Position numbers and translations under genes: made by a program. Of a stretch of DNA of 34,975 nucleotides, positions 8,203-34,975 are shown in pieces (within the stretch, counting starts at the first letter, position 1; each line of letters opens with the position of its first letter). The stretch comes from Malacoraja senta (lineage: Eukaryota). The stretch covers positions 62,001 through 96,975 of the forward strand of contig JAXLNO010003381.1 in the NCBI GenBank assembly GCA_038087875.1. The letters run 5' to 3'. Below the pieces are notes generated by a model. The model was not told the DNA's origin and did no database searches. It saw nothing but the letters and a program-made list of their open reading frames with translations.

Positions 8203-8269
8203 GTTAGTAACTCGACGAGCCAACTCAGCCTCACCTGAGAACAAAGTAGTTAAGTTCAATTCAGCCCAG

Positions 8270-11837: not shown

Positions 11838-11839
11838 TA

Positions 11840-13373: not shown

Positions 13374-13599
13374 TGTAGCGGCGCCACCTAGCGCACGCAG
13401 ATATCGAACCCGGCGTTCGGAAGCCGCGGTCACGTGATCCGGGAGAGGCCGTTGTTTTCGCGCGGTTTTCCCTTGGCGCGAGTTAGTTGAATGCTAACCA
13501 CCGATGTGGTCAGACGTGTTTGACAAACCTGTGTACTGCAACTTACTTTCGAATAAAGTTTTGGTTGAAACTCCAGTAGTCGTTTATCAAACCGCTAAA
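13374..13599 (+). repeat. Gypsy 5' LTR
   Basis: TGTAGCGG...CCGCTAAA. Contains E-box GTCACGTGAT and AATAAA. 221/226 identical to the 3' LTR. Confidence 0.95.
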
Positions 13600-13600
13600 T

Positions 13601-13618
13601 TGGTGACCCCGACGTGAT
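13601..13618 (+). promoter_or_regulatory. Primer binding site complementary to the tRNA-Trp 3' end
   Basis: TGGTGACCCCGACGTGAT is the reverse complement of the vertebrate tRNA-Trp 3' 18 nt (ATCACGTCGGGGTCACCA, from memory). It begins 1 nt after the LTR. Confidence 0.9.
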
Positions 13619-13641
13619 AGCCGTCGTTAGACAGAAGAATT

Positions 13642-14382
13642 ATGCAGGAAGAAGGTCCCTCTGCAGAATCGGCCAGCACGAGGCAAGGCTCACCGGCTTT
13701 CAAACTGCCCGCCTTTTGGACTGATCAACCTCAAGTATGGTTCGCCATTGTGGAAGCGCAATTCCACCTTCATCGTATCGACCACGATGAGACCATGTAT
13801 TTTCATGTGGTAGGAGCGTTACCGCAGGACTGTGCCTCGAGGCTGTTGCCCTTTATCAGAGACCCTCCGTCCAGCGGCAAGTACGAAGGGTTGAAGGCCC
13901 TGTTGTTTCACGCTTATGGTCTGACCCGTAGAGACCGGGCGGCAAGACTGCTGCACATGGACTGCATCGGCGACCGAAGGCCATCGACGATCATGGCCAA
14001 GATGTTGGCCCTGATGGACGTGCATCGACCCTGTTTGCTTTTCGAACAGGCGTTCTTAGAGCAGATGCCTGACGAAGTGCAGCTGATGTTAACAGGAGCT
14101 GATTTCATTGACCCGCAGCGGCTCGCAGAAAGAGCAGATGAGCTCTGGGCGCTCAGACGGCGGGAAGTACACGCCGTCGCCCGCCCCATAGTCACACAAC
14201 ATGTGCAGCCGCTCCGACAACGAGAGGAAGAGACTCAGCCCAGCGTCGAAGACGAAGCGTCGCGGACATCGACCTACTGCCAACGGAGATGGTGCTACTA
14301 CCACCAGCGATACGGGCTCGGAGCCCAAAGATGCCGAAGCCCTTGTGCGTTTCCGGGAAACGCCTCCGCCGATCGTCCATAG
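13642..14382 (+). CDS. gag: Gypsy Gag (246 aa, uninterrupted)
   Basis: N-terminal FKLPAFWTDQPQVWFAIVEAQF. C-terminal C-x2-H-x9-C-x3-C (CYYHQRYGLGAQRCRSPC). Confidence 0.9.
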   Translation: MQEEGPSAESASTRQGSPAFKLPAFWTDQPQVWFAIVEAQFHLHRIDHDETMYFHVVGALPQDCASRLLPFIRDPPSSGKYEGLKALLFHAYGLTRRDRAARLLHMDCIGDRRPSTIMAKMLALMDVHRPCLLFEQAFLEQMPDEVQLMLTGADFIDPQRLAERADELWALRRREVHAVARPIVTQHVQPLRQREEETQPSVEDEASRTSTYCQRRWCYYHQRYGLGAQRCRSPCAFPGNASADRP

Positions 14383-17300
14383 AGGCGAACGCGATCGGCC
14401 CAAACACACGCCTATTCGTCCGTGATCGCCATGCCGGTTACCGTTTCCTGGTAGATTCAGGTGCGCATGTCAGTATCCTGCCTCCACAACACCCGGGACC
14501 TCCGTGCGGGTAAGGTGGGACCTGTGCTCTCGGCCGTAAACGGGAGCGATATTCGCACCTACGGTACGCGGACCGCAAAACTAAATTTCGACTCCCACCA
14601 GTACAGGTGGAAGTTTATCGTTGCTGACGTCGCCCAACCGATCCTGAGCGTCGATTTCTTGCGCGCGTTCTCCCTGTTAGTCGACGTACGGGGTGATCCC
14701 TGCGTCGGGCCCACGCCCTGACACACCGCGCAACCCGTCAACGCCCTCGCAGCAACTATCCGAGGTAGCTGAGATCCAGAAACCTTTCACGACCCTGCTC
14801 GCCGATTTTCCAGGGTTACTCACGCCCCGGTTCGACGGGGCCGCGCCCCGTCATGGCGTAGTCCATCACATTCCCACCGAGGGTCCACCAGTGCACGCCC
14901 GCGCGCGCTGTCTCCCGCCCGATAAACTGCGCATCGCGCGGGACGAGTTCCAGCTCATGGAGGACATGGGAATTGTCCGGCGGTCGGATAGCCCATGGGC
15001 TTCCCCGTTACACATGGTACCTAAAGCGTCCGGGGGTTGGAGGCCTGGCGGCAAATATCGACGTCTAAACGCAATAACCACGGATGACCGGTATCCGGTC
15101 CCGAACATTCAGGATTTCTCGGCCCATTTGGAAGGGGCGACCGTCTTCTCGAAAGTCGACCTCATCCGTGGGTATAACCAAATCCCGGTCCACCCTGACG
15201 ACATCCCTAAGACGGCCACCATTACCCCGTTCGGCCTTTTCGAGTGGCTCAGAATGCCTTTTGGCCTGAAGAACGCAGCCCAGGCATTCCAAAGGTTAAT
15301 GGATCAGGTCGGCCGGGGTTTGCCATTCGTTTTCATCTACCTGGATGACATCCTGGTAGCCAGCCGCTCGGAGGCAGAACATACCAAACACCTCCGCTTA
15401 CTTTTCGAACGGCTGCACGAACACGGGTTGGTAATCAATCCCGAGAAGTGCCAGTTCGGGCTGCGCTCTATCTCGTTCTTGGGGCATAGTATCACTTCCC
15501 AGGGAGCGCAACCCCTGCCCGAGAAAGTTGACGCCATTCGGCAATTCCCCCGGCCATTGTCGTTTAAGGGTCTCCAGGAGTTTATCAGGATGGTTAACTT
15601 CTATCACCGTTTCGTCCCGTCGGCAGCCGCCATCTTGCGGCCGCTATTCCAATGCCTGGCTGGTAAGCCCAAGGACCTAGTTTGGTCTAAGGAGGCACAG
15701 AAAGCTTTTGAAGGGTCCAAGACGGCGTTGGCCAACGCCACAATGCTAGTACACCTCAGGGCTTCGGCCCAATCGGCACTAACCGTAGACGCCTCCGATG
15801 TCGCGGTGGGGGCCGTCCTTGAGCAGCGGGTAGGCAGTCGCTGGGTGCCGCTGCCGTTTTTCAGCAAGCAACTGCGAGCCCCGGAAATTAAATACAGCGC
15901 TTTCGGCAGGGAGCTCCTTGCGCTTTACCTAGCAATCCGCCATTGCCGCTATTTCCTAGAATGGCGAGCTTTCACCGCATTCACCGATCACAAGCCACTG
16001 ACGTTCGCTTTGACCAAGGTTTCCGATCCATGGTCTGCTAGGCAGCAACGGCACCTTGCCTACATTTCGGAATTCACGTTCGACATTCGACATGTGGCAG
16101 GAAAGCTGAATGTCGTGGCCGACACATTATCTCGTCCAGCGCTGCCCGAGGTCTCTGCGCTCAGTCTGGGTATCGATTACCAGGAGTTGGCCGCTGCCCA
16201 ACGGGTATGGGGATTTACCACAAAACTGAATCTGGAGTGAAGCTGGTTGAAGTGCCTTGTGGCGCCTCCAGCGCGTGGGTCCTTTGTGATGTTTCCACCG
16301 GTAAAGCCCGACCAATTGTCCCGGTCGCTTGGCGATGCCGGGTCTTCGACACCATCCATAGTTTAGCGCACCCATCAATTCGCGCTACCTCTGCCCTAGT
16401 CGCTGCGAAGTACGTCTGGCATGGCTTGAGGAAGCAAGTCGCTGCATGGGCTCGTTCCTGTATCCCATGCCAGACCTCCAAAGTGCAGAGACATGTACAC
16501 CCGCCGGTCCAGGATTTCGATGTCCCGGACGGCCGGTTCCTGCACATCCATGTAGACCTGGTAGGTCTCCTACCTTGTTCGCGCGGGGCTACCCACTTAC
16601 TGACTATCGTGGACAGGTTTACCAGGTGGGCAGAGGCCATCCCGTTAGCGGATACCTCCGCCGAGGCATGCGCGAGGGCCATTGTCTCGAATTGGGTCGA
16701 CCGTTTCGGGGTCCCCTCACATATAATGACAGACCGCGGGGCCCAGTTCACATCTTCCCTATGGGGCAGTATGGCGCAGATGTACGGTGCCACGTTACAT
16801 CAAACTACTGCTTACCACCCTGAGTCTAATGGGCTGGTCGAGCGATTCCACAGACATCTTAAGTCGGCGTTAAAGGCACGACTCACCGGCCCTGATTGGG
16901 TCGACCAGTTACCTTGGGTCCTCCTGGGCATCAGGACAACGCCCAAGGAAGACCTCAAAGCATCCTCGGCCGAGTTAGTTTATGGCTCGGTTTTGCGGGT
17001 TCCAGGGGATTTCTTGCCTACCCCCCGGGATCAGGAGAATGCCACCTCGCAGGTGTTGGAGGACCTTCACGAGCGGGCGCGCACTTTGGTCCCAGTCCCA
17101 ACTTCCCGGCACGGTTCATCTTCGGTTCATGTGCCTTCTGTGTTACGGGATTGTTTTTCTCCGTAGAGACGCTCATCGCTCGCCGTTACAGCGGGTGTAC
17201 GAGGGTCCGTACAAGGTGCTCAATGCGGGGGTTTCAACATTCACTTTGGACATGGGCGGCAGAGAGGAGTTTGTTTCTGTAAGCCGCCTCAAGCCTGCAC

Positions 17301-17570
17301 ATGTCGACGAGGATAGCCCAGTGACAGTGGCTACCCCACGGCGTAGAGGACGTCCACCTGCCGTTTTGACACCTTCAACACCCGTTCCCTCCGATCGCGT
17401 TTCTCTGTTCCCCTTTGTTACGCCCGTCCCTCGGTTGCGTTTTTCGCGTCCCTCCGGTCCTGTTGTGCCGGTCCCAAATGTTACGCTCGCCCCACAACCT
17501 CGGACTACACGTTCCGGTCGCACCGTCCGTTTACCCGTGCGTTTCCGTACCGCGGATTTTGGGGGGGGCC
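14355..17570 (+). pseudogene. pol: Gypsy Pol (protease, RT, RNase H, integrase with GPY/F) broken by 4 frameshifts
   Basis: PR FLVDSGA; RT PFGLKNA...YLDD; RNase H DAS, ELLA, TDHKPL, ADTLSR; IN HHCC, VDLVG, TDRGAQF, GLVERFH, YEGPYKV. Spread over ORF-track pieces 14289-14513, 14461-14721, 14693-16240, 16207-17166 and 16982-17635. Confidence 0.93.
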
Positions 17571-17571
17571 A

Positions 17572-17797
17572 TGTAGCGGCGCCACCTAGCGCACGCAGAT
17601 ATCGAACCCGGTGTTCGGAAGCCGCGGTCACGTGATCCGGGAGGGGCCGTTGTTTTTGCGCGGTTTTCCCTTGGCGCGAGTTAGTTGAATGCTGACCACC
17701 GATGTGGTCAGACATGTTTGACAAACCTGTGTACTGCAACTTACTTTCGAATAAAGTTTTGGTTGAAACTCCAGTAGTCGTTTATCAAACCGCTAAA
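17572..17797 (+). repeat. Gypsy 3' LTR preceded by polypurine tract (17561-17568)
   Basis: Direct repeat of 13374-13599, followed by the ATAT TSD. Confidence 0.95.
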
Positions 17798-18520: not shown

Positions 18521-19113
18521 TTATCTGGTGACGTGAGTGGACTTACCTGATCACGTTTGGCGTTGTCTAATTTCTCCTGGGTAACGTTTCAACACATGAG
18601 AAGCTGAGGAAGGCTGGACAAATTAGTGACGCGCATTTGGAGGTGGGTAAACAGTTCACAAGGTCACACGTTCCAGGAGTAGAATTTGGCCATTCGGCCC
18701 ATCGAGTCTACTCCGCCATTCAAACATGGCTGATCTCTGCCTCCTAATCCCATACAAGTTCAGACACAGTGTGCCCGCATTTGGGGGAGGGGTTGACGGG
18801 GTGGGCAAGGGAATGTTTGCGGTGGTGGACAGAGCGCCAGTCAAGTGGGCAAATGTCACCAGGATGAACCAGAGCTTCGAGGAGATGCTCCAATCCAGGC
18901 AACTGGAGAGCATTGCAGCCAACTCCTGATAGGTGCATTGTCCGTGGTGAGGAGGCTGGGGGAGGTGGCAAGTGAGTCACCAAGTTAGTCTCGAACCACT
19001 GCAAAGTCGTTTCCTGAGTAAACGGAAATTGACTGTTTGACTTCTGTTGTGAATGAGGAAGAGGACAACTCAAACGCAGTGCAGGGACCAAACCGATCCA
19101 ACGCAGCCGAGAC

Positions 19114-19210
19114 ATGGCGGTGGGACAGGGAGAATTCACCCACCAGAAACGGCCCAGATCCAGGGGAACAGTCGCTCTGCTGGTTCTTGTCGCTGTTGGT
19201 CTCACATCAG
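19114..19210 (+). CDS. Gene B exon 1: signal peptide
   Basis: 94/97 nt identical to 1557-1653. Encodes MAVGQGEFTHQKRPRSRGTVALLVLVAVGLTS(G). Phase-1 donor CAG|GTAAAT. Confidence 0.85.
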
Positions 19211-19469
19211 GTAAATCGTTGTTTTACAAAATGCTCTGTTCTTTAGAATTATTTACCAGCGCCTTGAATTATTTGTAACCAAGGACTTCTCTGTACTGTG
19301 TGGGGAGCTGATGATAAATTGCTCAACACTCGTTAGTTCCTGTAGAGACTTCCATCAGCGGTTGTTGTCGTGATGTGTGCAGCCAAATTGCACACAGCTA
19401 GCTCCCTGTGGAGAAGGGAGATAACTACCGACAGCTGGCCTTGTGGACCTCATTGAAACTTACTGAATA

Positions 19470-19705
19470 ATGCAATGCCTGGATAGAGTGGATGGGGTGA
19501 GGATGTTTCCACTAGTGGGAGAGTTTCGGACCAGAGGTCGCAGCCTGAGAATTAAAGGGCGTTCCTTTAGGAAGGAGATGAGGAGGAATTTCTTTAGTCA
19601 GAAGGTGGTGAAACTGTGGAATTCATTGCCACAGAAGGCTGTGAAGGCCTTCAATAGATATTTCTAAGGCAGAGATGGATCGATTCTTGATCAGTACGGG
19701 TGTCG
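19470..19705 (+). mobile_element. CR1-type LINE ORF2 C-terminal fragment
   Basis: Encodes CLDRVDGVRMFPLVGEFRTRGRSLRIKGRSFRKEMRRNFFSQKVVKLWNSLP. A shorter paralog lies at about 1945-2030. Confidence 0.8.
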
Positions 19706-19977
19706 TTCGCTCACGGCGGCGCTCCCTCCCCTCCAGTCACCGTGCTTCACGCACACAGACCCGGCTCCACCCCTCTCTCTCCCCGGGGAGACGCGGTGAA
19801 AAATACACGGAGGGCTGGGCAGGGGGTTTGAGCAACGTTTACAAACATCGGCCTCAGCTCACACCCGGACCCCAGCATCAGCTCCCGCCGCTGGCCCTCT
19901 CCCTCCCTTCTCTCCTTCCCTCTTCCCTTCCTCCCTTCTTTCCTTCCCTCCCTCCTTCCTCTCTCTTTTCCCTTCTC

Positions 19978-20109
19978 NNNNNNNNNNNNNNNNNNNNNNN
20001 NNNNNNNNNNNNNNNNNNNNNNNNNNNNNNNNNNNNNNNNNNNNNNNNNNNNNNNNNNNNNNNNNNNNNNNNNNNNNNNNNNNNNNNNNNNNNNNNNNNN
20101 NNNNNNNNN
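19978..20109. other. Assembly gap (132 N) between a CT-rich and an AC-rich simple repeat
   Basis: Run of N, inside gene B intron 1. Confidence 0.99.
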
Positions 20110-21250
20110 CCACAGACAACTAACACACACACATAACGCACAGACAACTAACACACACAACTAAGTTAGGATGGGGTAGAGGCCCAAAGGGTAGGATGGG
20201 GCTGAAGCCCAAAATTTAATGCCTGGATTGGTTTTTCACCAATGGTTATTGGTTTTCCAGGATCTATTTAATTAAATTACTTTTTTTTAAAATCATTTCA
20301 CAGTCACTAAAACAAGTGGTATTGTAACTATGTACTTTTCAGAGGTGATCTACACATTTTGTTTGTAGGCTTACATGTATGCAATTTTATATTAATTTTA
20401 TATTAAAATGTCGCTTAGATCAGTTAAAATGTCGCTTAGATCAGTTTGGTCCATTAAGTTGCATGCATTTTTTAAGTGCACATTTTGATTACTTTGCATT
20501 CTACCATAGGGATATAAAGTCTAGAATAGACTTTAATCAAATTTCTATGAATCTACAGACCTTGGCTGGGAACCTGGGGCTCGCCAAAATTGTTCCCAAT
20601 TGGGCCCCGCAACTCCTAAGGCCGGCCCTGCATGTACCTGTCTAACTGTTTCTTAAACGATGGGATAGTCCCTGCCTCAATTACCTCCTCTGGCAGCTTG
20701 TTCCATACACCCACCACCCTTTGTAATTGATGACACATCATAATTATTCCAGGTGGACGTGGAGTTTGAAACATCAGTGGCAGATCCAGCTTCCACCACA
20801 GGCCGGGAAGTTTAGTTCAACGGGGCACAAAGTGCTGGCGTAACTCAGTAGGTCAGGGAGTATCTCATGGTCTTGACTTGAAACGTCACATATCCATGTT
20901 CTCCAGAGATGCTGCCTGACCTGCTGAGTCACCACTGGCACCACAGGCAGCTGGCTATTCAGCTTTAGTAAAGCACAAAGTGCTAGAGTAAGTCAACAGG
21001 TCAGGCAGCATCTCTGGAGAACATCGATAGGTGACGTTTTGGGTTGAGACCTGAATAAGGGGTAGGCCAGATGAGGAAAAACCTTTTCACCCAGAGTTGT
21101 GAATCTGTAGAATTCTCTGCCACAGAGGGCAGAGGAGGCCAATTCACTGGATGTATTCAAGAGAGAGTTAGATATAGCTCTTAGGGCTAATGGAATCATG
21201 GGATATGGGGAGCAAGCAGAACGGTACTGAATTGGGATGATCAGCCATGA

Positions 21251-21830
21251 ACAGTCTGACCTGGTCACAAAACATCGCATCACTAGTTAAGAGAGCGCAG
21301 CAGCGGTTGCACTTTCTGCGCCGGATGAGAAGAGCTCACCCTCCCCATCCCATCCTCACCACTTTCTACAGGGGCACCATAGAGAGCATTTTGACCAGCT
21401 GTATTTCTGTCTGGTCTGGGGACTGCAAAGCCTCCGACTGGAAGTCCGTGCAGAGAGTGGTGAGGACGGCTGAAAAAATCATCGGGACTTCTCTTCCTTC
21501 AATCCGGGACATTGCATGCAAACGTTGATTGTCCAAGGCCAACAGCATTATAAAAGCCCCCACACATCTCCATCATGGACTGTTCACTATGCTGCCCTCG
21601 GGCAAAATATATCGCAGTATAAGGAGCAGAACGGCCAGGTTTTGCAACGGCTGCTACCCCCGAGCCATCAGACTCTTGAATTCCATATAATGTGCCGCCA
21701 CTATTATCTATTTATCTATTTTATCCTTTTGTTATTTTATGTTGCACGGTGAGCCAGATGCAACAAAATTTTGTTCCGACTTGCATTTGTTGGTGTACTT
21801 TTGAATGACAATAAAGTCTTTGATTGAAAA
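21251..21830 (+). mobile_element. Rex1/Babar-type LINE 3' fragment nested in a CR1 tail (about 21070-21910)
   Basis: Encodes KRAQQRLHFLRRMRRA...ILTTFYRGTIESILTSCISVW. It splits the CR1 consensus GATCAGCCATGA|TCATATTGAATGG. Confidence 0.75.
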
Positions 21831-22559
21831 TCATATTGAATGGCAGAGCTGGCTCGAAGGGCCGAATTGCCTACTCCTGCGCCTATTTTCTATGTTTATA
21901 TGTTTCTATGAATCGTCACCTATCCACTTTCTCCAGAGATAGTTCCTGACCCGTTGAGTTACTCCAGCACTTTGTGTCCTTTTGTGTATTAACCAGCATT
22001 TGCAGTTCCTTGATTCTACCAGTTTAATGGGGAAGTGGGTTGTACTGAGATTGAACACAGGGTGGGTCAGAGTGAGAGACAGGTTGGCTTCCTGTCACAT
22101 GACCACCACTCAGTGCAAGCCACGCCCACAGGGAAGGAGGATCTGGGCGCCAGGTAAATTCAGAAGCAGTTCTGCTTTCACTGGAACTTGGGGAACAATC
22201 CCAGGGAACTGGGAATTAACACCAGCGGGAAAAGCATGAAAGTGCAACAGGATCTGTACAAAAGAAGAGACAAAAAATGCTGGAGTAACTCAGCGGGACG
22301 GGCAGCATCTCTGGAGAGAAGGAATGGGTGAGGAAACATCACCCGTCAGTTTCTCCAGCGATGCTGCCTGTCCTGCTGAGTTACTCCAGCTCTTTGTGTC
22401 TATCTTTGGTGTAAACCAGCACCTGCAGTTCCTTGCTACACATGATCTATGCGAAACCATGAACCTGTCTGAACAGCACAAATTACATTTTTTAAATTGT
22501 TAAACCTCAGCTTGTGCTGCTGCAGTGTGCGTGATCTTTCATCATTAATGTGCCCACAG

Positions 22560-22883
22560 GGTCATGGGGAATAACTGGAGCCGAGGAGGTGAGGGGAGAG
22601 TTGGGGCAGTCGGTCACTGTGGAATGTCAGTATGGTCGGAAATACAGTGACTACAGGAAACGTTGGAGTAAAGGTTATGATTTATGGTCATCTGAGACCG
22701 TGGTTTCTACTGATCGCCCACGACGAGGGAGAACATCGATAACAGATAACAAAACACAACGGATAGTTTCAGTAACCATCGACAACCTGCAGAAGAGTGA
22801 TGAAGGACGCTACTGGTGTTTGGTAGAAAAGGAAAGAGATTCACCCATTGAATCAGCCCCCATCTCATTGAAGGTTTCTGAAG
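22560..22883 (+). CDS. Gene B exon 2: Ig V-set domain V2
   Basis: Acceptor CCCACAG|, donor GAAG|GTACGT, 324 nt, phase 1-1, open frame. 79/108 aa identical to V1. Confidence 0.92.
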
Positions 22884-23239
22884 GTACGTTGACGATCTCT
22901 CCTCACTCTCCCAGATGTGAACATGCCAGCCTGGGAATTCCGGCCTCGGTCCTGATAGTGACTCAGTGCCACATCCCCGGGGGTCGGGGTGAGGGGGGAG
23001 GGGACCTCATTTACTGGGGTCCCGGCCCGTGGGGCCACACGAAGGGCCCCACTGTCACAGGAGCAGTATGGGGGGGGGTCGGGGAGATGTCAGACACCAG
23101 CCCCACGGAAGGTCCCAGCTACCGGCGGTTCTGCTGCTGAGGCTCATTTCCCCAAAGATGATCGCTTTACTGGGGAAACCGGCCCCTCACCTGGAGAAAG
23201 GGGTCAAGGGGGGAGGGTAGGGAGCAGGTTAGTAGAAGA

Positions 23240-23420
23240 TACTTAAAATTAGAGAATTCAACGTTCAAACCGTTGGGTTGTAAACTACCTGAGCGTAATA
23301 TGAGGTGCGGTTCCTCCAATTTGCATGTGGCCTCACTCTGGCAATGGAGGAGGCCCGGACAGAAAGGTCAGTGTGGGAATGGGAAGGGACGTGACAGGGT
23401 TGGCAACCGGGAGATCAAGA
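23240..23420 (-). mobile_element. Penelope-like element, GIY-YIG endonuclease C-terminal fragment
   Basis: Minus strand reads SHSHTDLSV/LLHCQSEATCKLEEPHLILRSGSLQPNGLNVEFSNFK (one frameshift). Confidence 0.75.
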
Positions 23421-23624
23421 AGGGTCCTGACCCGTAAAGGACACCTAAAAGGACACCTACAAAACCTGCACATTTCAGTCGTCAAATTTAACTCAGGGTC
23501 CTTAAATTTGTAATGTTCAGCCTTATAGTGTTCTCTCTCTGGAATTCTGGATAACTGGGCCAAAAACACCCCCCCACTATACTAGGGTGGGGAAAAAGCT
23601 CCAGCTCTTCGCACAATCTATAGT

Positions 23625-24020
23625 CTAATATTTCTCTGGCATGTCTTGCACATCATCGTAGTATTCTATCCTCGGGGTCTGCTTCTTAGGGGAAACAGTT
23701 TCACCTTTATCCTGGATCAACGAAAGCTGCTTGGCAGTGGCTCTTACTAGAAAAAAACTAACACAGGGTAAGACACAACATAGCACCACAATAACCCCCA
23801 GCAGTGCAGCTCCAATAATTACCCCCATCTTAGTCAGCCATGCTCCCCAACCGCCTAACATATTTTCCAGCCAACTAAAGACGTCATGTCAAAACCCACA
23901 CTCTGCTTGTTCTCTTTACTCAGATTTCTCAACTTATCCATTGCTTTAGTGGGCTAGTATTATTAGGTATGAAGGTGAAGCATTGTTCCCCAAACAAGAC
24001 ACATACACCCCCTCATTCTG
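23625..24020 (-). pseudogene. env: ERV env TM-subunit remnant
   Basis: GVCVLFGEQCFTFIPNNT (a degenerate CX6CC, 23977-24003), then WLENMLGGWGAWLTKMGVIIGAALLGVIVVLCCVLPC membrane span. Confidence 0.8.
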
Positions 24021-24167
24021 ACCTTATTAACGCCAGTCTTAGGGTCACTAATGTCTCCAAAAACCTCACTTATTATCTTGTTAAAGCTCTGCTCTTCCCT
24101 CACTTCTTTGTCCTCCTGTTCACTTACCTCAGGGCTATTATCGAGTCGTACCTGTGGGTCAGCCCTC

Positions 24168-24169
24168 AT

Positions 24170-24203
<34 letters not shown>

Positions 24204-24748
24204 ATTTTATTTGTATAGCGCTTTTCAAGGACTCAAAGTCGCTTTACATGGAGAGTCAAGAACAAAATAAAATAGAACAAAATAGGGCAGAAAGACAGAG
24301 ATAATAATAATAATAATACATTTTATTTATATAGCGCTTTTCAAGGACTCAAAGTCGCTTAAATGCAAAGGGGAGGGGGACATGGGACTAAGGGTATGCA
24401 GAGGTGAAGATATGGGTCTTGAGGCAGGACTAGAGGATGGTGAGGGACTCAGAATTTCAGATCAATTGTGGGAGGGAGTTCCAGAGCCTGGGAGCTGCCC
24501 TGGAGAAGGCTCTGCATCCCAAAAGTGCAGAGGTTGGATTTCGGAATGGAGAGGAGACCGGCTGATAAGGATCTGAGGGACCGTGAGGGTTGGTAGGGGG
24601 AGAGGAGGTCAGTGAGATAAGGGGGGGCCAAGTGGTTGAGGGCTTTGTAGGTAAGGACCAGGATTTTGTAGATGATCCGGTGGGAAATGGGAAGCCAGTG
24701 AAGTTCTTTGAGAACTGGGGTGATGTGGTGCCATGATTTGATGTAAGG
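24168..24748 (-). mobile_element. L2-type LINE 3' fragment inserted in the ERV integrase tail, with a duplicated (ATT)n tail
   Basis: Encodes HHITPVLKELHWLPISHRIIYKILVLTYKALNHLAPPYLTDLL. The tail unit occurs at 24168-24247 and 24301-24362. Confidence 0.85.
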
Positions 24749-26790
24749 ATTGAGATGGTACCAGGTAGATCGACCTTCTACCTGAACAGCTGTTTCGGAA
24801 AGCTCATACATACACCTTGTCTCCGGGTTTAAAGGGTCCTTCCTCCTGGTCCACCTTCAACTGCTTTTGCTTTGCCTGTGCATAAATAGACTTGTGTATC
24901 ATAATTAACTGTTGCATATACTGCTTAAATTCTACCTCTAACTGTTCCAAACTCAGTCCCTTGTAGGGACCTCTCCATTGTGCCACCGGCATGGGTCGGC
25001 TAGTAAGCATCTCATGTGGTGTTAGGTGGGTTATTCGGTTAGTTTGCATGCAACATCTCTTCAGTGCTAATGGCAGGGCATCGATCTAATTCAACTGTGT
25101 AGTTACACAAATCGTATTTATCTTAGCCTTCAATGTTCCATTTATTCTTTCCACCATGCCCTGTGACTACAGATGGTACACACCCAAATCTTTGTTTTAT
25201 TCTAAGGGCCTGTAGCCCCAGCTTGACTACTCTCTAAATGAAAACCAATCCATTGTCAAAGCTGATTTCTGTAGGTCTACCAAACCTCGGGATTACCTCA
25301 TTCATCAGAAACTTTACTACAGTCCCTGCACCTAAATCTTTGGACAGTACTGCCGCCACCCACGTACTAAATCTATCAATCACTACTAGCATATACCTTT
25401 TTCCTCTTACCTTCTTTATCATGTCCACATAGTCGATCACCAGGTGCCTAAATGGACCTTCAGGCACAGGAATGTGACCTATAGGCGTGATTATTCCCAC
25501 TCTGACATTGTCCTGACCTACTAGCATATACCTTTGTCTGACCTTGTTTTGAGCTCATACTGTGATGAAACGTGGTCCACCGACGCCTGCAAGTAAGGTG
25601 ACCAAAACCCATCCTTTTTTACCTTCCTTATAACTTCCCCCCTTGCACAATAATCTAACCCATGTACTTCTGTCATAAGAATGGTCAGCAATGGTGTGGG
25701 TGCTACCAATAATCCTTCAGTATCCACATGCCCTTCAAGTTCTGCTTAGCTCCCCTTTGTCTCCACATAGTTTACTCTGCTTAGATTACCTTAACTTGCA
25801 TTTGAATTATGTCCTCCTCTGTGGGTTCCAGATCCAAGCTTACCTGAGGCTCATTAACAGCTGATCAGCCTCCAGATGTTGTTCTGACTGCATCGTCTGC
25901 TCTTTGATTTCCCTTTATAATCATGTTGTTTCCCTTCTTATGTGCTTGGCATTTAATGACAGCTAGTGCCCCTGGCTTCATTATTGCCCTTATCAGGTCT
26001 GTACTTTACTGCTAACTTTGCATGGGGTCTCCGTTGCTTTTCTTGAAGCCTTTCTTTTTCCCTACTGCTCCAAACATGTGACAGACCCCATGTGCATATG
26101 CTGAGTCTGTATAAACTTCAGCTATCTCACTTTCCATTAAGTCACATACTGCTCTTAAAGCCTTAATTTCTGCTAACTGAGCTGAGCAAGATTGCAGGCA
26201 AGCTTCCAATTTAATTACCTTAAATTCTAATTCATCCTGTTGCACACTGCAAACCCTGCATACTTGCTATTATGACCCCATTAACAAGAAACATCCACAA
26301 ACAAGACCTTTGTGTCCTCTTCATTCAAAGGCTCTGACTATAAAACATTTCTCAGACTTGTGTGTCCTGCTTCCTTCATTATTTTCCTTAATGGCCTCAC
26401 AATTTCAACATACTTTCCAATCTAGTCTGAACTATATCCTGCCATTCCCAAGATCATCATCATCTGTCCTACTGTCTGAGGTTTGGGAGCTTTAATTATT
26501 GCTTCAATTTGATTCTGCGCTATGGCTTTTACTTCTTTGGATATTACTCGTCCTGAATATTCTGCCTGCTGCTGACAAAACAGCAACTTTTTCCTGGATA
26601 CGTTATGACCTCCTATGCCAGCTTTTCCAAGAGAATTAAAATGTCTAGCTCACATTGCCTCTCACTTGTGGAACAAACCAACAAACCATTCACATACTGT
26701 ATCAAATACTTTCTAAGGGTACACCTTCCAAATCTGCATTTAACATCTCATTAAAAACATGGGGCGAGTATTTAAATCCCTGGGCATCCT
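24749..26790 (-). pseudogene. pol: ERV pol remnant (RT C-terminal half, RNase H, integrase)
   Basis: RT QGFKYSPHVF...QYVNG (decayed YVDD); RNase H SAQLAEI, YTDSAYAHG, KCQAHKK, GNQRAD; IN PFRHLVIDY, IDRFS, DNG, GMVER.NGTLK, TAVQVEGRSTWYHLN. Confidence 0.9.
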
Positions 26791-27049
26791 AGCCTAGGTG
26801 TATTTAATACTTCTTCTTAATGTTCCTATCATAGCTATGTTCACCACTATCTTAATATAATTATTATTATTTCCTGATTACCATACCTGTTCACATCCCC
26901 AACACACCTTATCCATTACCTGCCTCCTTACTCGCCTTACTTAACCTCCTCCTTGAGATCCCTCCCTCCCTTGGGGACCCCAGTCCTGTCTGGGCTTATA
27001 TCCAGATTTATTTCACTCCTGATAAGGCATTTGAGGAAACGCTCCCCCA

Positions 27050-28330
27050 AAGACATTTATTATTAGCATGGAATTCTCTGGACCCTGTTTGGCTCTGTCA
27101 TAGGACTCACTGTGTGTCGGTGCATCACTTATTTCAGTCTTTCCAACCAAGTCTGTTGTTATTGACAACATTGTCTTTCCTTTTTCACGCTTTTTCTTTT
27201 TGAGCTCTTCAAGTTACATTTGCATCACTTTTCTCTGCACCTCTTCCTGCTGGTCTCAAGTCTTTTTTCTATCTTTGCGATATTTCTCGACTGCATGGAC
27301 CAAATGATTGCTGAACCAGGGGTGGGACATAGATGACAATCCCACCATCTCCTCCAATATAGACTTGACTTGAGGAGGCATGGCATCCACCACAGTGGTT
27401 CAGAATATAGTGTTCATTAACTGGTTGCCTTCTATTTCTTGTTCAGTTTCGAGTCTCCAACTTTTCAGCTGGATCTCCAGATAGGCTGCTGGATTCTTGG
27501 AGTTGAGAGGAAACAAAGCATTAAGCATTACCTTACAGCAGAGGGTAGCTGTGCAGAGATTCACCTCCCCCGCTTACAGTTTCTTAAAGGGACACACACA
27601 CCTACCCTTACAACATCTGGTTTACAACAAACAAAGGACTTATCACATATATGAACTTCTGAATTCATTCAAAAACCATTTTTTACACACAAATCACATT
27701 TGTTCGATTCTTACTTCAAAGAAATTATGCCATTTTCTACACATATTAAAGTTTCAAAACACAAATGTATACATTCTTATCTCCTTTTTTTAAGTTAAAG
27801 TAGGATGGTCTAATCCCCTATCAGTCCGTTTCCTGAGCGCTGTGATTGGACATTGATTCAGATTGTGATTAGTCAGACTCACCGTCACTCAAATTCTAAC
27901 CACACCCCACTAAGATCACAACCAATCAGACTCCTAGTCACTCAACATCTGACCACAACCCACTCCCATCAAGCTTCAGACACAGAGCACATTTTCTCCT
28001 TTGTCTCTGTGCAGAGTGGTAGGCAAGTATCTATCTTTTACACAAAGTTTCTATCTTTTAGCAATCATGATTTTTACGCTCTTCTTCCCTCTTTACTTTA
28101 TCTGCTGCGTTACTTCTCTTTTGCTCTGTGCCGTTTAACTCTACCTGATGGATTTAATATTGTTTCTCTGTACTTTCCTACCTCAAACTCCCTTATCTTT
28201 ACCATCTGTTCTTTTAGTCTCCAAACCTGGGAGCACTTCCAGTCCTTATTTCGCCACCGAATTCTCCTTCATTTCTCCCCCTTTCTTTCCTTTTTCATCT
28301 TCCTACCTTTTTAACAGTTCTTCATTCCAT
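27050..28330 (-). pseudogene. gag: ERV gag remnant
   Basis: DAMPPQVKSILEEMVGLSSMSH...NHLVHAVEKYRK at about 27250-27420 resembles fish ERV capsid C-termini. Boundaries are approximate. Confidence 0.6.
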
Positions 28331-29010
28331 GTTCCTTTCCTTTGTTTCCATGTGCCCCCAAAATTTAGGTTACTTTATAACTTACTATTCTAGTTTAAAC
28401 TACTCAATGCTTATTCTCTGAGCTCTTCTTTATCAGCGCTTTCTTTCTCTGCCCTAGCCCGTAACATTTTACCATTTTACACTACCTAATTAACCCCTAT
28501 CCCCCCTGATTTTACATATATACATTATATCCTGTCTGATCAGATTTTCTTCTCTTCTCTAAGAATGGTCACCACAGGATAATACCTGCCATATGCGGAC
28601 CACGCCCCCTTCTCAACAGACTAATCTGCAGGTTTTAGGATGCCTTGCCTAAGCAAACCCCGCGCTCTTCTCAACGGGTGGTATCTGCAAAGTCTTATAT
28701 ACATTCTGTACAAAATACTTATCAGCTTAACTATTTTCTACTTACCCTACTGCGCAGACTTCTCGAGCAATCCTCCACGTCTCCTAGACAATTTAGTGCC
28801 AGATTCTTGGGTCGGAGAGACCTTCTAACTACCTAGGCACAGAAGTGTCCCCAATGGGTTCCCATGTACAACAGGTTATTAGTCCAAATGAAACGGAAAA
28901 CCGCATAATTTTTATGGGTGGCCACCCTTTTTCCTGTTGTCCCTAGGAGCCACAGAGGGGGCAGGGAAGCGCCCTGGGCTGTTTGTCTTTTAATTAACAG
29001 TCTCTTACCG

Positions 29011-29028
29011 ACCCTGCTCGGTGCGCCA
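29011..29028 (-). promoter_or_regulatory. ERV primer binding site, tRNA-Ser(UGA)-like
   Basis: TGGCGCACCGAGCAGGGT matches 17/18 nt of the complement of the vertebrate tRNA-Ser(UGA) 3' end as I recall it (TGGCGCAGCGAGCAGGGT). It lies 4 nt from an LTR-terminal CA (29033-29034), with AATAAA (about 29098) and TATAAAAA (29186-29193) upstream on the minus strand. Confidence 0.7.
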
Positions 29029-29680
29029 ATTATGTTGTGGTTTTCAATACTCAAATTAATTCAGGCCACATGGAGAATTCTTCAAGAAGTTTAAACTTTT
29101 ATTTGCAAACAAAAGTTGGATCCCCCCCCCCCCCACATCATCAGTCCACGTGGAGCTCTCTGACCCACAAACAAAGGATCGTCTCTTTTTATACCATTTT
29201 CAACTCTGCATGCCCTACCCCTGTTACATTTCCATATCCAATCATTTTCTGACATTCCCTCATCATCAGCCAATCACTTGCTCCCACTTATCTCCTCCTT
29301 CCCAGTACATTTCCATATTTGCAACTGATGTAGGTAGTCACATGACTCCCTTTGTGGCCCCTCGCCTGCCATGTGCTCGTAACTTCTTTGTTCAGTCGTT
29401 ACATTCCAACAAAGTGATATCCAAGAAACGTGGACAATTCCCAGAACCCACTTATCAAAATATAAGAGATACAGTGGTCACTCAATTTATATAAACAAGA
29501 CATTGTTCCCATTAAACTCTATACATCTTTGGGAAGAATGTTACCTCTTAAACTACAGATCTAAACACAGGGGGTCTAATGTTTATAATCCTAATTAAAG
29601 CACAATATATTTCCTAGATGGTCTCGTTACAAATCATATCTTTAACTAACATTACCTTGTATTATAAACCTTAAAAGTAT

Positions 29681-29841
29681 TGTGATGTATGTAATATAAT
29701 TAGCATATGTTATGTCTTGTGCAAGGGGACGCATGCGCTAGGGGAGACTCAAGGTGGCGTCATAGAATAAAGAAGCTTGTCAGTTTACTCCTGTATCTGA
29801 GAGTTATTTTGGGTCAGTTCCAAGCACCCACATACACTACA
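29681..29841 (+). mobile_element. 161-bp solo LTR with 5-bp TSD AGTAT
   Basis: TGTGATGTATG...CATACACTACA imperfect terminal inverted repeat, internal AATAAA, AGTAT at 29676-29680 and 29842-29846. Confidence 0.75.
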
Positions 29842-31089
29842 AGTATGAATTTACTCTATCTTTGCAAACACACACATCCTATTCTCGTACAAATGTCACA
29901 CTTGATAAATGATAATTGCTTCTTGGTCAGCTCACACACCCTCCCCTTTCTTGTTATCTCTATGGGATGAAATTCCAAACTCATTGTTAGGCCTCTTTTT
30001 ATGACTCTGCTTTCACACTTATAACATTACTCAAAGGATGTTTACATCTGCAGACCGCCATCTCTATCTCAAAGTATGGCCACCTCAGTTTTCATAAACA
30101 TAAGAAATCCAACATACAAAGGTTACATACCCCTCACCCGAGCACCTTCTGCCCTTCACATATGTCTTATCTCTTATCCCAACATGAGTATAATTAAAGT
30201 AGCTAAAGACTGGATCACAGAATGCAGAGGCGCCCTTCTATCTTAGACAAGTATAAACAGTCATCAGTCGTAAACCCCAAGCTCTTTGTGCTGTAGCAGA
30301 GCTAAGGAATGTGTCATAACGAAAGAGCAAATGGTCTGTGACCAAATGGCCTGTGACCTGAAAACGGGTCCCACTGCCAAACTACTTTTGAATACAGATT
30401 ATATAAGATACATTTAATATAGAAGATAATATTTACTATAATGAGGAAAACCATTTTCACCCAGAGAGTTCCACTTTCTCCAGAGATAGTTCCTGGCCCG
30501 TTAAGTTACTCCAGCACTTTGTGTCCTTCTGTGTATTAACCAGCATCTGCAGTACCTTGTTTCTACTAGTTCAATGGGGAAGTGGGTTGTAGTGAGATTG
30601 AACACAGGGTGGGTCAGAGTGAGAGACAGGTTGGCTTCCTGTCACATGACCACCACTCAGGTCAAGCCACGCTCATAGGGAAGGATGATCTGGCCGCCAG
30701 AGAGATTCAGGAGCAGTTCTGCATTCACTGGAACTTGGGGAACAATCCCGGTGAAATGGAAATTAACACCAGCAGGAAAAGCATTAAAGTGCAACAGGAT
30801 CTATGCAAAAGAAGAGACACAAAATGCTGGAGTAACTCAGCGGGACGGACAGCATCTCTGGAGAGAAGGAATGGGTGAAGAAACATTACCCGTCGGTTTC
30901 TCCAGAGATGCTGCCTGAACTGCTGAGTTACTCCAGCTCTTTGTGTCTATCTTTGGTGTAAACCAGCACCTGCAGTTTCTTGCTGCACATGATCTATGCG
31001 AAACCGTGAACCTGTCTGAACAGCACAAATTACATGTTTTTTATTGTTGCTGCAGTGTGAGTGATCTTTCATCATTAATGTGCCAACAG

Positions 31090-31413
31090 GTTCAAGGGGA
31101 ATAACTGGACCCAAGGAGGTGAGGGGAGAGTTGGGGCAGTCGGTCACTGTGGAATGTCAGTATGATCCGAAATACAAAGACAACAACAAGCTATGGAGTA
31201 AACGTGATTCTTACTGGTCATCTTCTGAGACCGTGGTTTCTACTGATCACCCACGACGAGGGAGAACATCGATGACTGATAACAAAATACAACGGATACT
31301 TTCAGTAACCATCGACAACCTGGAGAAGAGTGATGAAGGACACTACTGGTGTGCCATAGACATAACATTGAACTTCGATGAAAGGACCTCCATCTCATTG
31401 AAGGTTTCTGAAG
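31090..31413 (+). CDS. Gene B exon 3: Ig V-set domain V3
   Basis: Acceptor CCAACAG|, donor GAAG|GTACGT, 324 nt, phase 1-1, open frame. One codon longer in the C' region and one shorter in the CDR3-like loop than V1/V2. Confidence 0.92.
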
Positions 31414-32688
31414 GTACGTTGACTCTCCTCACTCCCCCAGATGTGAAAATTCCAGCCTGGGAATTCCCGGCCTCGATCCTGACGCTGACTCGGTGCCACA
31501 TCCCCAGGGGTCCATCGGCGGGGGAGTTTTGGGGGAGGTGAGAGGGGGGTAGGGGGGGCCCGCTGCATGGGGCCACACCAAGAGCCCACTGTCCTAGTAA
31601 CAGTGTGGGGGGGGGGGCTCATCAATGGGGACCGGCAGTCCTGCTGTGATGGCTCATTTCCCCAAAGACGATCTCTCCGGGACCAGATACTCTGGTGGTT
31701 ACTCCAGCATATCAGGAGGAGGAAACCACCCCCTCACCCTCTCCCCCTGCCCGTCACTGTCACACCCACCACACACACAACATCTGAAGAAGGGTCCCAA
31801 CCCGATACATCGTTTATTCATTCCTTCCACAGATGCTGCCTGACCTGCTGAGTTACTCCAGCACTTTGTGTTTTGCTCAAGATTTGACCACCTGCAATTC
31901 CTTGTGTCTCACAAACTTTGGTGATTCATGAGCTCAGTTTATTGTTGTCGTCTGCGCTGAGGTACAGGAAAAAGCTTTTACCATGTTTCCAATGAGGGCC
32001 AAATCATTGGGTATTTTTAAGATGGAGATTGACAGGTTCTCGATCAGTACGGGTGTCAAGCGATATGGGGAGAAGGCAGGAGGATGGGGTTGAGAGGGAG
32101 AGATTGATCAGCCATGATTGAATGGCGATGTAGACAAAAATGGGCCAAATGGCCTAATTCGGCCCCCATCACATGAACTTGAAAGAAGAATCCTCATCAG
32201 ATGAGTGATATAGACGTTATTCTGAGCCACACAAACTGTATAAGATGAGATACTCAACAGGTCAGGCAGCATCTGTGGAGAGAGAACAAGAGTTAATGTT
32301 TCAGATAGATACCTCCAACCAAATTGCATTATTTCCAATTCAGTCCGCGTAACGCAAATAGTCCATGCATGCTCCTGCTCCCAAATTCTTCTCCAATGTA
32401 GAAGACATGTGCCTAACTCTAGCAGCAGGCATATAACACAGCCTGTGGGACTCTGAAGGGCATGAAAGATGTCTCTGAATGCTTGTGACCATTCGGTGGC
32501 ATCTTAATGGGTGAGCCTCCTATCTAGATCAAGAGGATTGGTCCATCTTTGGTGGCCTCAGAAGGATCTTTGCCCAAATGTCTGGAGTGGGATTCAAACC
32601 AAGAATCTCCCACACACGACAAAAGTGGCACAGAACATGCTTTCAGGCATTTCATGTTTAAAAACTTCATTTTCTTCATCTCCACAAG

Positions 32689-32845
32689 GGTCTCAAACAA
32701 GCCACCCAGATATGGTCACCACCACCTCTACAATAATAAGCACTAGGGCTTCCACCACAACCACTCTGACCACCCTGCCTCAAGGTACACCAACCACCAA
32801 GGAAGCAAGTTCCACTGAGGCTTCTCGTTCAACACTTCCAAAATG
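32689..32845 (+). CDS. Gene B stalk exon (Ser/Thr-rich)
   Basis: Acceptor CTCCACAAG|, donor AATG|GTTAGT, phase 1-2. Encodes (G)SQTSHPDMVTTTSTIISTRASTTTTLTTLPQGTPTTKEASSTEASRSTLPK. 15 nt longer than the gene A stalk. Confidence 0.82.
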
Positions 32846-32919
32846 GTTAGTAACTCGAAGAGTCAACTCAGCCTCACCTGAGAACAAATTAGTTAAGTTC
32901 AGTTCAGTTCAGTTTAAAT

Positions 32920-33200
32920 ATACAGCGTGAAAATGGGCCCTTTGGCCCGCCGAGTCCACTCTGAGCAGCGATCACCCCATACACCAGTTCTGTTCTACAC
33001 ATTGGGAACAATTTACAGAAGCCAATTAGCTTACAAACCCGCACGTCTTTGGAATGTGGGAGGAAACCGGAGAAGCTGGAACAAACTCTTGCGATCACAG
33101 GGAGAACGTACAAACTCTGTACAGACAGCGCCGGTAGTCAGGATCGAACCCGGTTCTCCTGCGCTGTGAGGCAGCAACTCTACCACTGCGACACCGTGCC
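32920..33200 (-). mobile_element. V-SINE (HE1-like)
   Basis: Paralog of 8270-8535. Confidence 0.75.
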
Positions 33201-33452
33201 AACCCTAAATGGTCGGCATGGACACAATGGGCCAAAGGTCCAGTTCCCATGTCATATCTCTAAACTCTAAACTACTTTATAGTTCCTTAAATACCAATAG
33301 AATTATTCATAATGTTATAGAATTTAACCTGCACTGCATTCAAGTATATTTCCACATTTTTACTTTCCGGATCGAAACGCATGGTTCGTTACTGGGGAAG
33401 GAATCAGTCCTATTACCATGAGCTCGTCATTGTTTTTTCTTGTATTTTGCAG

Positions 33453-33568
33453 GGAGGCAGTTACATTTTCATGGCAGGTTGTTCTACCGATTGCCTTGAC
33501 AATTGTCTTTCTTCTGTTCATCACTGCCATTATCCTATGTGTAAAAATGAGGCAGAAAAAGAAAACTG
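33453..33568 (+). CDS. Gene B transmembrane exon
   Basis: Strong acceptor TTTTTTCTTGTATTTTGCAG|, donor TG|GTAAGT, phase 2-1 matching the stalk. Encodes (W)EAVTFSWQVVLPIALTIVFLLFITAIILCVKMRQKKKT(G): an uncharged TM followed by a basic stop-transfer cluster. Not shown in the ORF track. Confidence 0.88.
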
Positions 33569-34659
33569 GTAAGTTCCGTTGAATGTACGTAAATATCAAG
33601 GGGCACTCTTGTTGATAACAAAAAAGGGCATTTCCATCAGAGGTTACTTTCACAAACTCAGACCATTCACCTAGCGTATAACAGCAGGGAAAGATACCAA
33701 GTGCTGGAGTAACTCAGCGGGTCAGGCAGCATCTCTGGAGAACATGGACAGGTGACATTTCAGGGCGACACAGTGGCAAAGCAGGAGAGTTGCTGCCTTA
33801 CAACGTAAGAAACCGGGTTCGATCCTGACTAATGGTGCTGTCTGTATGGAGTTTGCACGTTCCTCCCTGTGAGCGCGTGGGTTTACACCAGAGAGACAGG
33901 CCCTTTGGCCCAACTCGTCCTGACTGATGCCCAAGGTGCTTCCCTATGCTAGTCCCACTTACCTGTGCTTGTCCCACATTACTCTTTAAGTTTTCTTCTC
34001 CATCTATCTCTCCAAATGACTTTTAAATGATGGAATTGTACTTGCCTTTACCACTTCCTCTGTCGATTTGATCCGTGTTATGAGAGTGGGCAAATCTGGG
34101 GTGAATTGACAGGAAGATGGGGCGAATAAAATGGGATTGTGGAGATGAATGGAAATGGATGCTTGATGGGCCAGCATGAGCTCAAAGGGCCAATGGGCCT
34201 GCTTCCATACTGATTGTTCTGTGAAAACCATCTGGTTGGAAGCTGCAATAATATGCAGAAGTGCGTCAGTCTTATCCAGATTGAACAAGAATGTTTTCAT
34301 CTGCAAATGGTACAGAGGTAGTGATGGCCACAGTAAGCCAGGAGACGATTGAGATCTTTCAGAAGCAGAAGGAGCCAAACATATTTACCAACAGGTTCAG
34401 ACATCGACGTCCTGTTATTTAGCATAGTGATGACACGTGAAACCTCTGAATCTCCATGCAGTGAAATTATCCGGAAATTGTAAAGCCGTTTTGAAGTAGA
34501 ACTCTTGAAAATGTCCAGCAGCGATGGATGTAAGATCTGCAGGAGGAAGCCAGGAGAGATGACTGGTGACAACTTTGCTGAATCATGAAGTCATAGAGAC
34601 ATACAACACTGGTAGGAAATAGGCAACGTTTCGGGCCGAAACCCTTCTTCAGACTGAAT

Positions 34660-34975
34660 TGGCTAGGATAGACTGGCAAACTATACTTGACAGTGGAGAT
34701 GCAATGGCAAAGATTTTAAGACCGCAAGGATGAACTCCAGAAATTGTTCATCCCCGTCTGGCGAATAAATAAAACTGGGAAGGTGGCTCAACCGTGGCTG
34801 ACAAGGGAAGTCAAGGATAGTGTTAAATCTAAGGAAGAGGCATACAAATTGGCCAGAAGAAGTGGCAAACCAGAGGACTGGGAGAAATTTAGAACAGAGG
34901 AGGACAAAGGGGGGTGGGGGGGGAGAGCATGAAAAGAAAGCTAGCGGGGAATATAAAAACTGACTGTAAAAGTTT
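34660..34975 (+). mobile_element. CR1-type LINE ORF2 fragment (endonuclease-RT linker), running off the window end
   Basis: Encodes FIPVWRINKTGKVAQPWLTREVKDSVKSKEEAYKLARRSGKPEDWEKFR. Confidence 0.8.

Follow-up and report, generated by a model that had tools for sequence, protein, structure and literature searches.

The stretch of Malacoraja senta DNA studied here (34,975 nucleotides; contig JAXLNO010003381.1 of assembly GCA_038087875.1, forward-strand positions 62,001 to 96,975; hereafter the window, whose own numbering is used throughout) contains a receptor gene, gene B, in which one leader exon precedes two exons for immunoglobulin V domains, V2 and V3, followed by a stalk exon and a transmembrane (TM) exon. 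This layout raises the question of what such a gene makes: whether both V domains are joined in one protein, whether the pair is of recent origin, and whether the product is the missing polymeric immunoglobulin receptor (pIgR) of cartilaginous fish. We conclude that gene B is probably an ordinary member of a batoid family of CD300/pIgR-like (CMRF35-like) multi-V type I membrane receptors, with its two V domains spliced together. The parts of the gene that lie in the window, apart from intron 1, are as follows.

19114-19210, plus strand: leader exon, 97 nucleotides, starting with ATG and ending in phase 1, donor CATCAG/gtaaat
22560-22883, plus strand: V2 exon, 324 nucleotides, phase 1-1, membrane-distal-type V-set domain, acceptor gtgcccacag/GG, donor CTGAAG/gtacgt
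22884-31089, plus strand: V2-V3 intron, 8206 nucleotides; the homologous Amblyraja radiata intron has 814 nucleotides
31090-31413, plus strand: V3 exon, 324 nucleotides, phase 1-1, membrane-proximal-type V-set domain, acceptor gtgccaacag/GT, donor CTGAAG/gtacgt
32689-32845, plus strand: stalk exon, 157 nucleotides, Ser/Thr-rich, phase 1 to 2, AG/GT borders
33453-33568, plus strand: TM exon, 116 nucleotides, an uncharged TM followed by KMRQKKKT, inhibitory-type, AG/GT borders

Joined together, the five exons give 1018 nucleotides and 339 stop-free codons, and the reading frame is still open beyond the end of the window, past the TM exon. The first-pass annotation of this DNA had proposed that 97+324+324+157+116 nucleotides splice into one open frame, and direct reading of the exon borders bears this out; direct reading of the joins likewise agrees with its statement that both V exons are symmetric, with products skipping either V2 or V3 remaining in frame. 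The signal peptide encoded by the leader exon has TVALLVLVAVGL as its hydrophobic core. The window has three V exons in all, V2, V3 and the V1 exon of a neighboring one-V paralogue (gene A, described below), and each matches the Pfam V-set family with expect values (E) of 2e-14 to 2e-11. The leader of gene B is 97.8% identical to that of gene A (1557-1649).

It had also been claimed that a single leader lies ahead of V2 and V3 and that nothing resembling a leader, stalk or TM separates them, and the searches confirm both parts. No copy of a leader, stalk or TM, and no extra V copy, was found between 22884 and 31089 by sensitive blastn-short searches or by tblastn with four relatives. Across the whole window, the two leader copies detected by blastn-short and tblastn are at 1557 and 19114, the two stalk copies at about 8062 and at 32689, and the single TM of the gene B type at 33453.

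The closest counterpart is a two-V gene of Amblyraja radiata, annotated by RefSeq as 'CMRF35-like molecule 3' (P0155). Residues 1-339 of gene B align with residues 1-336 of this protein at 76.7% identity, and collinearity with the corresponding A. radiata locus (L001, on CM021389.1) extends from 18.5 kb to the end of the window, at 88-95% identity. This locus is arranged as follows.

10001: leader
13966-14289: first V exon, Va
15104-15424: second V exon, Vb
about 16.5-16.7 kb: stalk
17305-17418: TM

The two genes thus share the order leader, Va, Vb, stalk and TM, a separate exon for each V, a distal and a proximal V type and an uncharged TM, and the sole structural difference in layout is the length of the intron between the V exons. 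Both A. radiata V exons have an acceptor flank identical to that of V3, and the donors have the same sequence as well. At the protein level the leader is 97% identical to that of P0155 and the TM 88% identical, whereas the V loops differ strongly; the tail of P0155, as modelled, is without immunoreceptor tyrosine-based inhibitory motifs (ITIMs). This whole-length collinearity with an annotated two-V protein, together with the tandem V arrays that are usual in the closest relatives, makes leader-V2-V3-stalk-TM the best gene model, as originally suggested. A further point of the first-pass annotation stands in part: V3 does begin GSRG and V2 GSWG, but the use of GSRG as a mark of an inner domain is not supported, as the first V domains of relatives begin with it as well.

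Gene B is not alone in this organization. A full HMMER scan with V3 recovered 2034 relatives, and nearly all of the best 150, from which the domain counts were taken, have 2-12 matched V stretches. The closest named relatives are RefSeq models called 'polymeric immunoglobulin receptor-like' or 'CMRF35-like molecule' in skates and rays, namely Leucoraja erinacea, Rhinoraja longicauda, Amblyraja radiata, Narcine bancroftii, Hemitrygon akajei, Mobula and Pristis; more distant many-V relatives are present across vertebrates, and no annotated protein of the window's own locus was among the homology-search matches. With identities of 57-80%, the window is distinct from the A. radiata and L. erinacea loci. 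The batoid relatives have a leader and stalk like those of gene B, one to five V domains in tandem and a TM of either of two types. Multi-V examples include L. erinacea P0002 and P0153 (three V), R. longicauda P0151 and P0152 (four V), N. bancroftii proteins (four to five V) and H. akajei P0017 (two V), and one-V members also exist (gene A and A. radiata P0175 and P0176). Several of the family paralogues are located on one A. radiata chromosome.

Gene B resembles the batoid multi-V proteins in its leader, its V type, its stalk, the use of alternative TM types and the variable number of tandem V domains, and it shows one phase 1-1 exon per V, the exon order of the family and collinear domains. 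It differs from them in having just two V domains and is 50-69% identical to these proteins, which are computed models from other species; the gene B model as a whole is 65-69% identical to the L. erinacea and R. longicauda proteins. Its stalk exon is 74-79% identical to the stalks of P0153, P0002 and P0152 by tblastn and its TM 77.5% identical to that of P0153. Gene B adds one member to a fast-evolving, paired multi-V family that annotation already predicts in several skates and rays.

The two TM types suggest how this member may signal. In the first type an Arg lies within the TM, which is followed by the short end EEGEEQRR; in the second the TM is uncharged, and K/R-rich residues lead from it into a tail with ITIM-consensus motifs, about 70 residues long. 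The gene B TM is of the second type, and the gene A exons at about 10203-10319 and at 12181-12249 are of the first. P0153 and P0152, whose TM is of the gene B type, have the motifs VIYTTV and VVYATI/VVYSTI in their tails, and the earlier argument that an uncharged TM speaks against pairing with DAP12 or FcR-gamma is consistent with this match. The homology predicts that a tail with ITIMs is encoded shortly beyond the end of the window; the A. radiata tail exons are located 1.9 and 2.9 kb past the TM exon.

Whether the two V domains are a young duplication can be judged from the flanking introns. The 550 nucleotides 3' of V2 are 90.6% identical to the flank in the Va-Vb intron of L001 and only 52% identical, and so unalignable, to the Vb flank, while the 550 nucleotides 3' of V3 are 90.3% identical to the flank in the Vb-stalk intron. 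The V3 exon has its best match in A. radiata Vb (90.0% identity). Synonymous divergence (dS) gives the same pairing: it is 0.056 for V3-Vb, 0.057 for V1-V2 and 0.086 for both V2-Va and V1-Va, and 0.13-0.21 between the group of V1, V2 and Va and the group of V3 and Vb. Flanks, exon identity and dS all pair V2 with Va and V3 with Vb, and the V duplication therefore predates the split of the two loci. The suggestion that gene B is a young receptor made by V-cassette duplication is thus not supported; the two-V layout is old, with the order Va-Vb already present in the ancestor common with the A. radiata P0155 gene.

A protein tree of 29 V domains agrees in outline. V1 and V2 are sisters (99/92) in a clade of the distal type (94/95) that also takes in the A. 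radiata and L. erinacea first domains, and V3 falls outside this clade and groups with proximal domains. In approximately unbiased (AU) tests neither V2 and V3 as sisters (p 0.059) nor V1, V2 and V3 as one clade (p 0.23) was formally rejected. The tree alone is therefore indecisive, and the argument for age is built on the intron flanks and dS.

The exon sequences have diverged further than the upstream intron next to them (84-89% versus 93-95% identity). The V1-V2 and V3-Vb pairs have ratios of nonsynonymous to synonymous divergence (dN/dS) of 2.5 and 2.6, and each excess reaches only p ~0.09 in a Fisher test. About 20 of the 25 amino-acid changes between V3 and Vb fall in residues 23-46 and 88-99, corresponding to the segment from complementarity-determining region (CDR) 1 to C' and to a CDR3-like loop, with loop limits that were drawn after the alignment had been seen; the changes spare the frameworks, the two canonical Cys and the Trp. 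Such a distribution is consistent with diversifying selection on functional binding domains and argues against V3 being a dead exon. The fast-changing CDR-like loops of genes A and B could reflect recognition of a rapidly changing ligand.

The relation of gene B to pIgR, to CD300 and to the skate MDIRs has to be considered with these features in mind. The best solved structural relatives of the V domains are pIgR D5 and D1, the teleost structure 5f1s, CD300f, CD300a, NKp44 and TREM2; matches in the PDB to pIgR domains have E of 2e-28 to 5e-28, and those to CD300f, CD300a and CLM-6 have E of 1e-10 to 1e-17 (about 1e-13 to 1e-17 for CD300f itself). V domains of the pIgR/CD300 type carry a described Cx6-7C motif (10.1101/2022.04.21.489081), and this Cys pair is kept by pIgR, CD300, TREM, NKp44 and the more distant ray and shark relatives. 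V1, V2 and V3 instead have Ser at both positions, W-C having become W-S with no second Cys after it, and the same loss is seen in the skate-family proteins P0155, P0153 and P0152, so that the change appears to be common to the skate family as a whole.

Mammalian CD300 genes are clustered and have paired forms with a charged TM or with ITIMs. CD300 and gene B share a V-set domain of the same subtype and a mucin-like stalk, whereas CD300 has a single V and keeps the Cx6-7C pair that gene B, with two V domains, has replaced by Ser. A pairing of charged-TM and ITIM-bearing forms would be a further, predicted parallel. Skate MDIRs, of which MDIR1-5 are published from the clearnose skate, are described as a multigene family with similarity to CD300, TREM and pIgR (PMC3031540). 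No match named MDIR was among the homology-search results. MDIRs reportedly have one to six domains, a count ascribed to Cannon and colleagues in 2006, and these domains are said to be classed as I- or C2-set, whereas those of the gene B family are V-set.

The first-pass annotation had pointed to pIgR, and one reading would make gene B the missing cartilaginous-fish gene for a two-V transcytosis receptor of polymeric IgM. Its V domains do find their best solved matches among pIgR domains, its relatives are named 'pIgR-like' by RefSeq, and tandem V-set domains of the same subtype are what pIgR is built from, with four or five in tetrapods and two in teleosts (10.1101/2022.04.21.489081). However, pIgR is a unique gene, whereas gene B belongs to a family with two paralogues in the window plus the terminal exon or exons of a third at 704-778, and is one among many clustered paralogues with alternative activating- and inhibitory-type TM exons. 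The long cytoplasmic tail of pIgR carries sorting and transcytosis signals, whereas relatives with the gene B type of TM have ITIM-consensus tails of only about 70 residues. The V domains lack the Cx6-7C pair, and their loops evolve with dN > dS, unlike those expected of a receptor for a conserved immunoglobulin/J-chain surface. In addition, the C-terminus of the shark J chain is poorly conserved and mammal-like transport is thought unlikely (PMC4279169). The multigene cluster, the paired TM types, the ITIM-type tails of relatives, the fast loops and the loss of the Cx6-7C pair therefore place gene B in a CD300-like paired family whose likeness to pIgR is at the level of domains only, and we consider identity with pIgR extremely improbable.

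If gene B is a two-V receptor of this family, the exons must be genuinely linked, jointly spliced and expressed, and each of these steps can be challenged. The link between leader and V2 crosses an assembly gap:

19978-20109, no strand assigned: assembly gap, 132 N, the only N run in the window, within intron 1

The gap lies 768 nucleotides past the leader donor and 2450 nucleotides before the V2 acceptor; being intronic, it leaves the reading frame of gene B untouched. The region is a repeat-rich tandem array with units 85-92% identical, and an assembly artefact could in principle have fused parts of neighboring paralogues to give the two-V layout or the leader link. The stretch from V2 to the TM is, however, without any gap, between 18.5 kb and 35 kb the unique segments of the introns are ordered throughout as in the A. 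radiata locus, and the 3' flank of V2 extends to the exact start of the homology to the Vb cassette. The sequences flanking the gap also retain the ancestral order, with order and strand as in intron 1 of gene A and intron 1 of L001, which supports the leader-to-V2 join, short of proof. A misassembly of this kind is accordingly very improbable.

Even with the exons correctly placed, one V cassette may usually be skipped, making leader-V2-stalk-TM or leader-V3-stalk-TM the main product and the two-V form minor or absent. Either skip would stay in frame because both V exons are phase 1-1, the V2-V3 intron has been enlarged to 8.2 kb with retroelement fragments, RefSeq isoforms of Narcine bancroftii differ by one V (these being computed models on near-identical repeated exons), and the family has the one-V forms mentioned above. 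But V2 and V3 both retain intact splice sites, which are near-identical to each other and to those of the A. radiata two-V model, both exons combine conserved frameworks with loop-focused change so that neither looks dispensable, and introns of 8 kb are nothing unusual in vertebrates. Predominant skipping is therefore unlikely in our judgment, although it deserves to be kept in mind, and splicing of V2 to V3 into one mRNA is predicted as the likely, if far from certain, outcome. A regulated form of skipping, acting as a switch among V2-only, V3-only and V2-V3 inhibitory receptors with different loops, would be quite unlikely, and it is less likely still that some member of the family is a functional stand-in for pIgR in cartilaginous fish.

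A more radical possibility is that gene B is silent or decaying, having been inactivated by the insertions upstream and in the V2-V3 intron too recently for its frame to have decayed. A long terminal repeat (LTR) element lies 1.3 kb upstream, and an intact frame says little by itself about constraint when divergence is about 10%. No indexed RNA run contained words from V2, V3, the stalk or the TM, the only matching runs being DNA-like, and in the one RNA run that was mapped, a poly-A run, depth was about zero on V3, stalk and TM and there were no junctions; 6% of this run, from an unknown tissue, had been read. This mapping covered 28976-34975, and thus the V3 acceptor, stalk and TM, with V2 lying 8.2 kb away outside it; three other mapped runs are DNA, with even depth across introns and exons. 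The RNA test is nevertheless almost powerless, resting on a single run of unknown tissue read to 6%, and each of the five exons has an open frame and canonical splice sites. Uniform decay would also not produce changes in V3 that cluster in the loops at a dN/dS of 2.6 relative to the A. radiata counterpart and leave the frameworks untouched. We therefore regard a silent gene B as improbable.

The RNA results nonetheless count against a spliced two-V receptor, as do the AU value for V2 and V3 as sisters and the p values of the dN/dS excesses given above, and several further points weigh on the same side. Neither P0155 nor any of the other relatives is a cloned cDNA; all are computed RefSeq models. 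Because intron 1 is interrupted by a gap, the connection of leader and V2 depends on the scaffold. Compared with A. radiata, the intron between V2 and V3 is ten times as long and filled with retroelement debris, and either this or the LTR element before the ATG could alter splicing or expression. The inhibitory nature of gene B is predicted from homology of the TM exon, the cytoplasmic exons lying beyond the window.

Gene A, on the same strand, provides the nearest comparison within the window, and self-comparison shows that the two genes form a tandem repeat of a receptor gene unit. The features of gene A and the corresponding segments are as follows.

1557-12249, plus strand: gene A, one-V paralogue, with leader at about 1557-1653, V1 at 4647-4970 and stalk at about 8062-8203
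about 10203-10319, plus strand: gene A TM exon, Arg in the membrane span, activating-type
12181-12249, plus strand: gene A last exon, ending EGGEEQRR
239-1384 (gene A) and 11699-13373 (gene B): about 91% identity
1437-2030 (gene A) and 18994-19557 (gene B): 91.6% identity
3103-4005 (gene A) and 20631-21096 (gene B): corresponding segments
4009-5259 (gene A) and 21923-23166 (gene B, V2 cassette): 91.7% identity
3980-5538 (gene A) and 30441-31966 (gene B, V3 cassette): 85.5% identity
5722-8530 (gene A) and 31955-33188 (gene B): corresponding segments

From these correspondences gene B is a gene A-like unit with two V cassettes. The single V of gene A has a Va-type 5' side and a Vb-type 3' flank starting at 5295/5299, and this switch of flanks indicates that gene A lost its proximal V by a deletion of about 930 bp relative to L001. 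Judging from their TM exons, the two genes resemble an activating/inhibitory pair of receptors. An apparent second stalk-like copy is present in gene A at about 8733-8798 (7830-8069 versus 8534-8772, 90.8%). A copy of an activating-type last exon, 72% identical to the C-terminus of P0002, lies at 704-778 on the plus strand; it is presumably the end of the next upstream gene, giving a repeat unit that runs from leader to last exon with about 800 nucleotides between genes.

These observations can be combined in a model in which two old V lineages were already ordered Va-Vb in the ancestor shared with the A. radiata P0155 gene. In the lineage leading to the M. senta genome the short Va-Vb intron of gene B would have grown to 8.2 kb through retroelement insertions, and gene A would have lost its proximal V and carried an activating-type Arg TM. 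The predicted gene B product would consist of a signal peptide, the distal V2, the proximal V3, a Ser/Thr stalk of the O-glycosylated type, an uncharged TM and an ITIM-bearing tail, and A and B may act as an activating/inhibitory couple for a rapidly changing ligand.

These findings correct two readings of the locus, gene B being neither a newly made two-domain receptor nor the long-sought pIgR of sharks and skates. They also provide a clean example of change in domain number, with gene B keeping the Va-Vb pair across a transposon-swollen intron and gene A having deleted the proximal V. For those cataloguing the innate receptors of cartilaginous fish, the useful lesson is that RefSeq 'pIgR-like' names in these animals are no evidence of pIgR function. 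Should the skipping switch prove true, variation in V number would amount to diversification of innate recognition in the skate family at the level of splicing as well as of genes.

The V2-V3 intron itself contains degenerate retroelement fragments on the minus strand at 23625-26245, with Pfam matches to rve (E 1e-7) and RNase_H (E 5e-5); a short open reading frame at 23625-23861 on the same strand, encoding a hydrophobic span, has no Pfam match. At its 3' end, 30441-31089 is a 650-nucleotide copy of V-upstream intron sequence, and on this V3 side there are an extra 450 nucleotides of V-upstream homology (30441-30897) that are not present between Va and Vb in A. radiata. The 8.2-kb intron is the short Va-Vb intron enlarged by retroelement debris. 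Intron 1 of gene B also contains a fragment of the long interspersed nuclear element (LINE) type, with an ALKBH8_N-like domain, at 21247-21525.

The element between the two genes is better preserved:

13374-17797, plus strand: near-complete LTR retrotransposon flanked by a 4-bp ATAT target duplication, its two 226-nucleotide LTRs 97.8% identical to each other

Its open frames encode DUF7041 (gag-like), RVT_1 (E 1e-33) and RT_RNaseH in a reverse transcriptase/RNase H segment of 515 residues, and rve in an integrase of 319 residues. It is inserted 1.3 kb upstream of the gene B ATG, and the empty site is kept in gene A at about 1380-1384. We considered whether the insertion breaks the core promoter of gene B and rejected this, as it leaves 1.3 kb of ancestral upstream sequence that is common to L001.

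Each V exon is bracketed by copies of an 85-nucleotide repeat, about 82% identical to one another, at the following positions.

4014-4098, 4436-4521 and 5397-5480: copies around V1
21928-22012 and 22347-22435: copies at V2
30475-30559 and 30897-30982: copies at V3

The homology of the Vb cassette in A. radiata begins exactly at a copy of this repeat, which may be a substrate for gain and loss of V cassettes through unequal recombination. Finally, within the mapped region every run has very high depth at 30776-30975, 31776-32175, 32976-33175, 33576-33775 and 34576-34775, and these segments in the gene B introns mark very high-copy interspersed repeats that resemble short interspersed nuclear elements (SINE-like).

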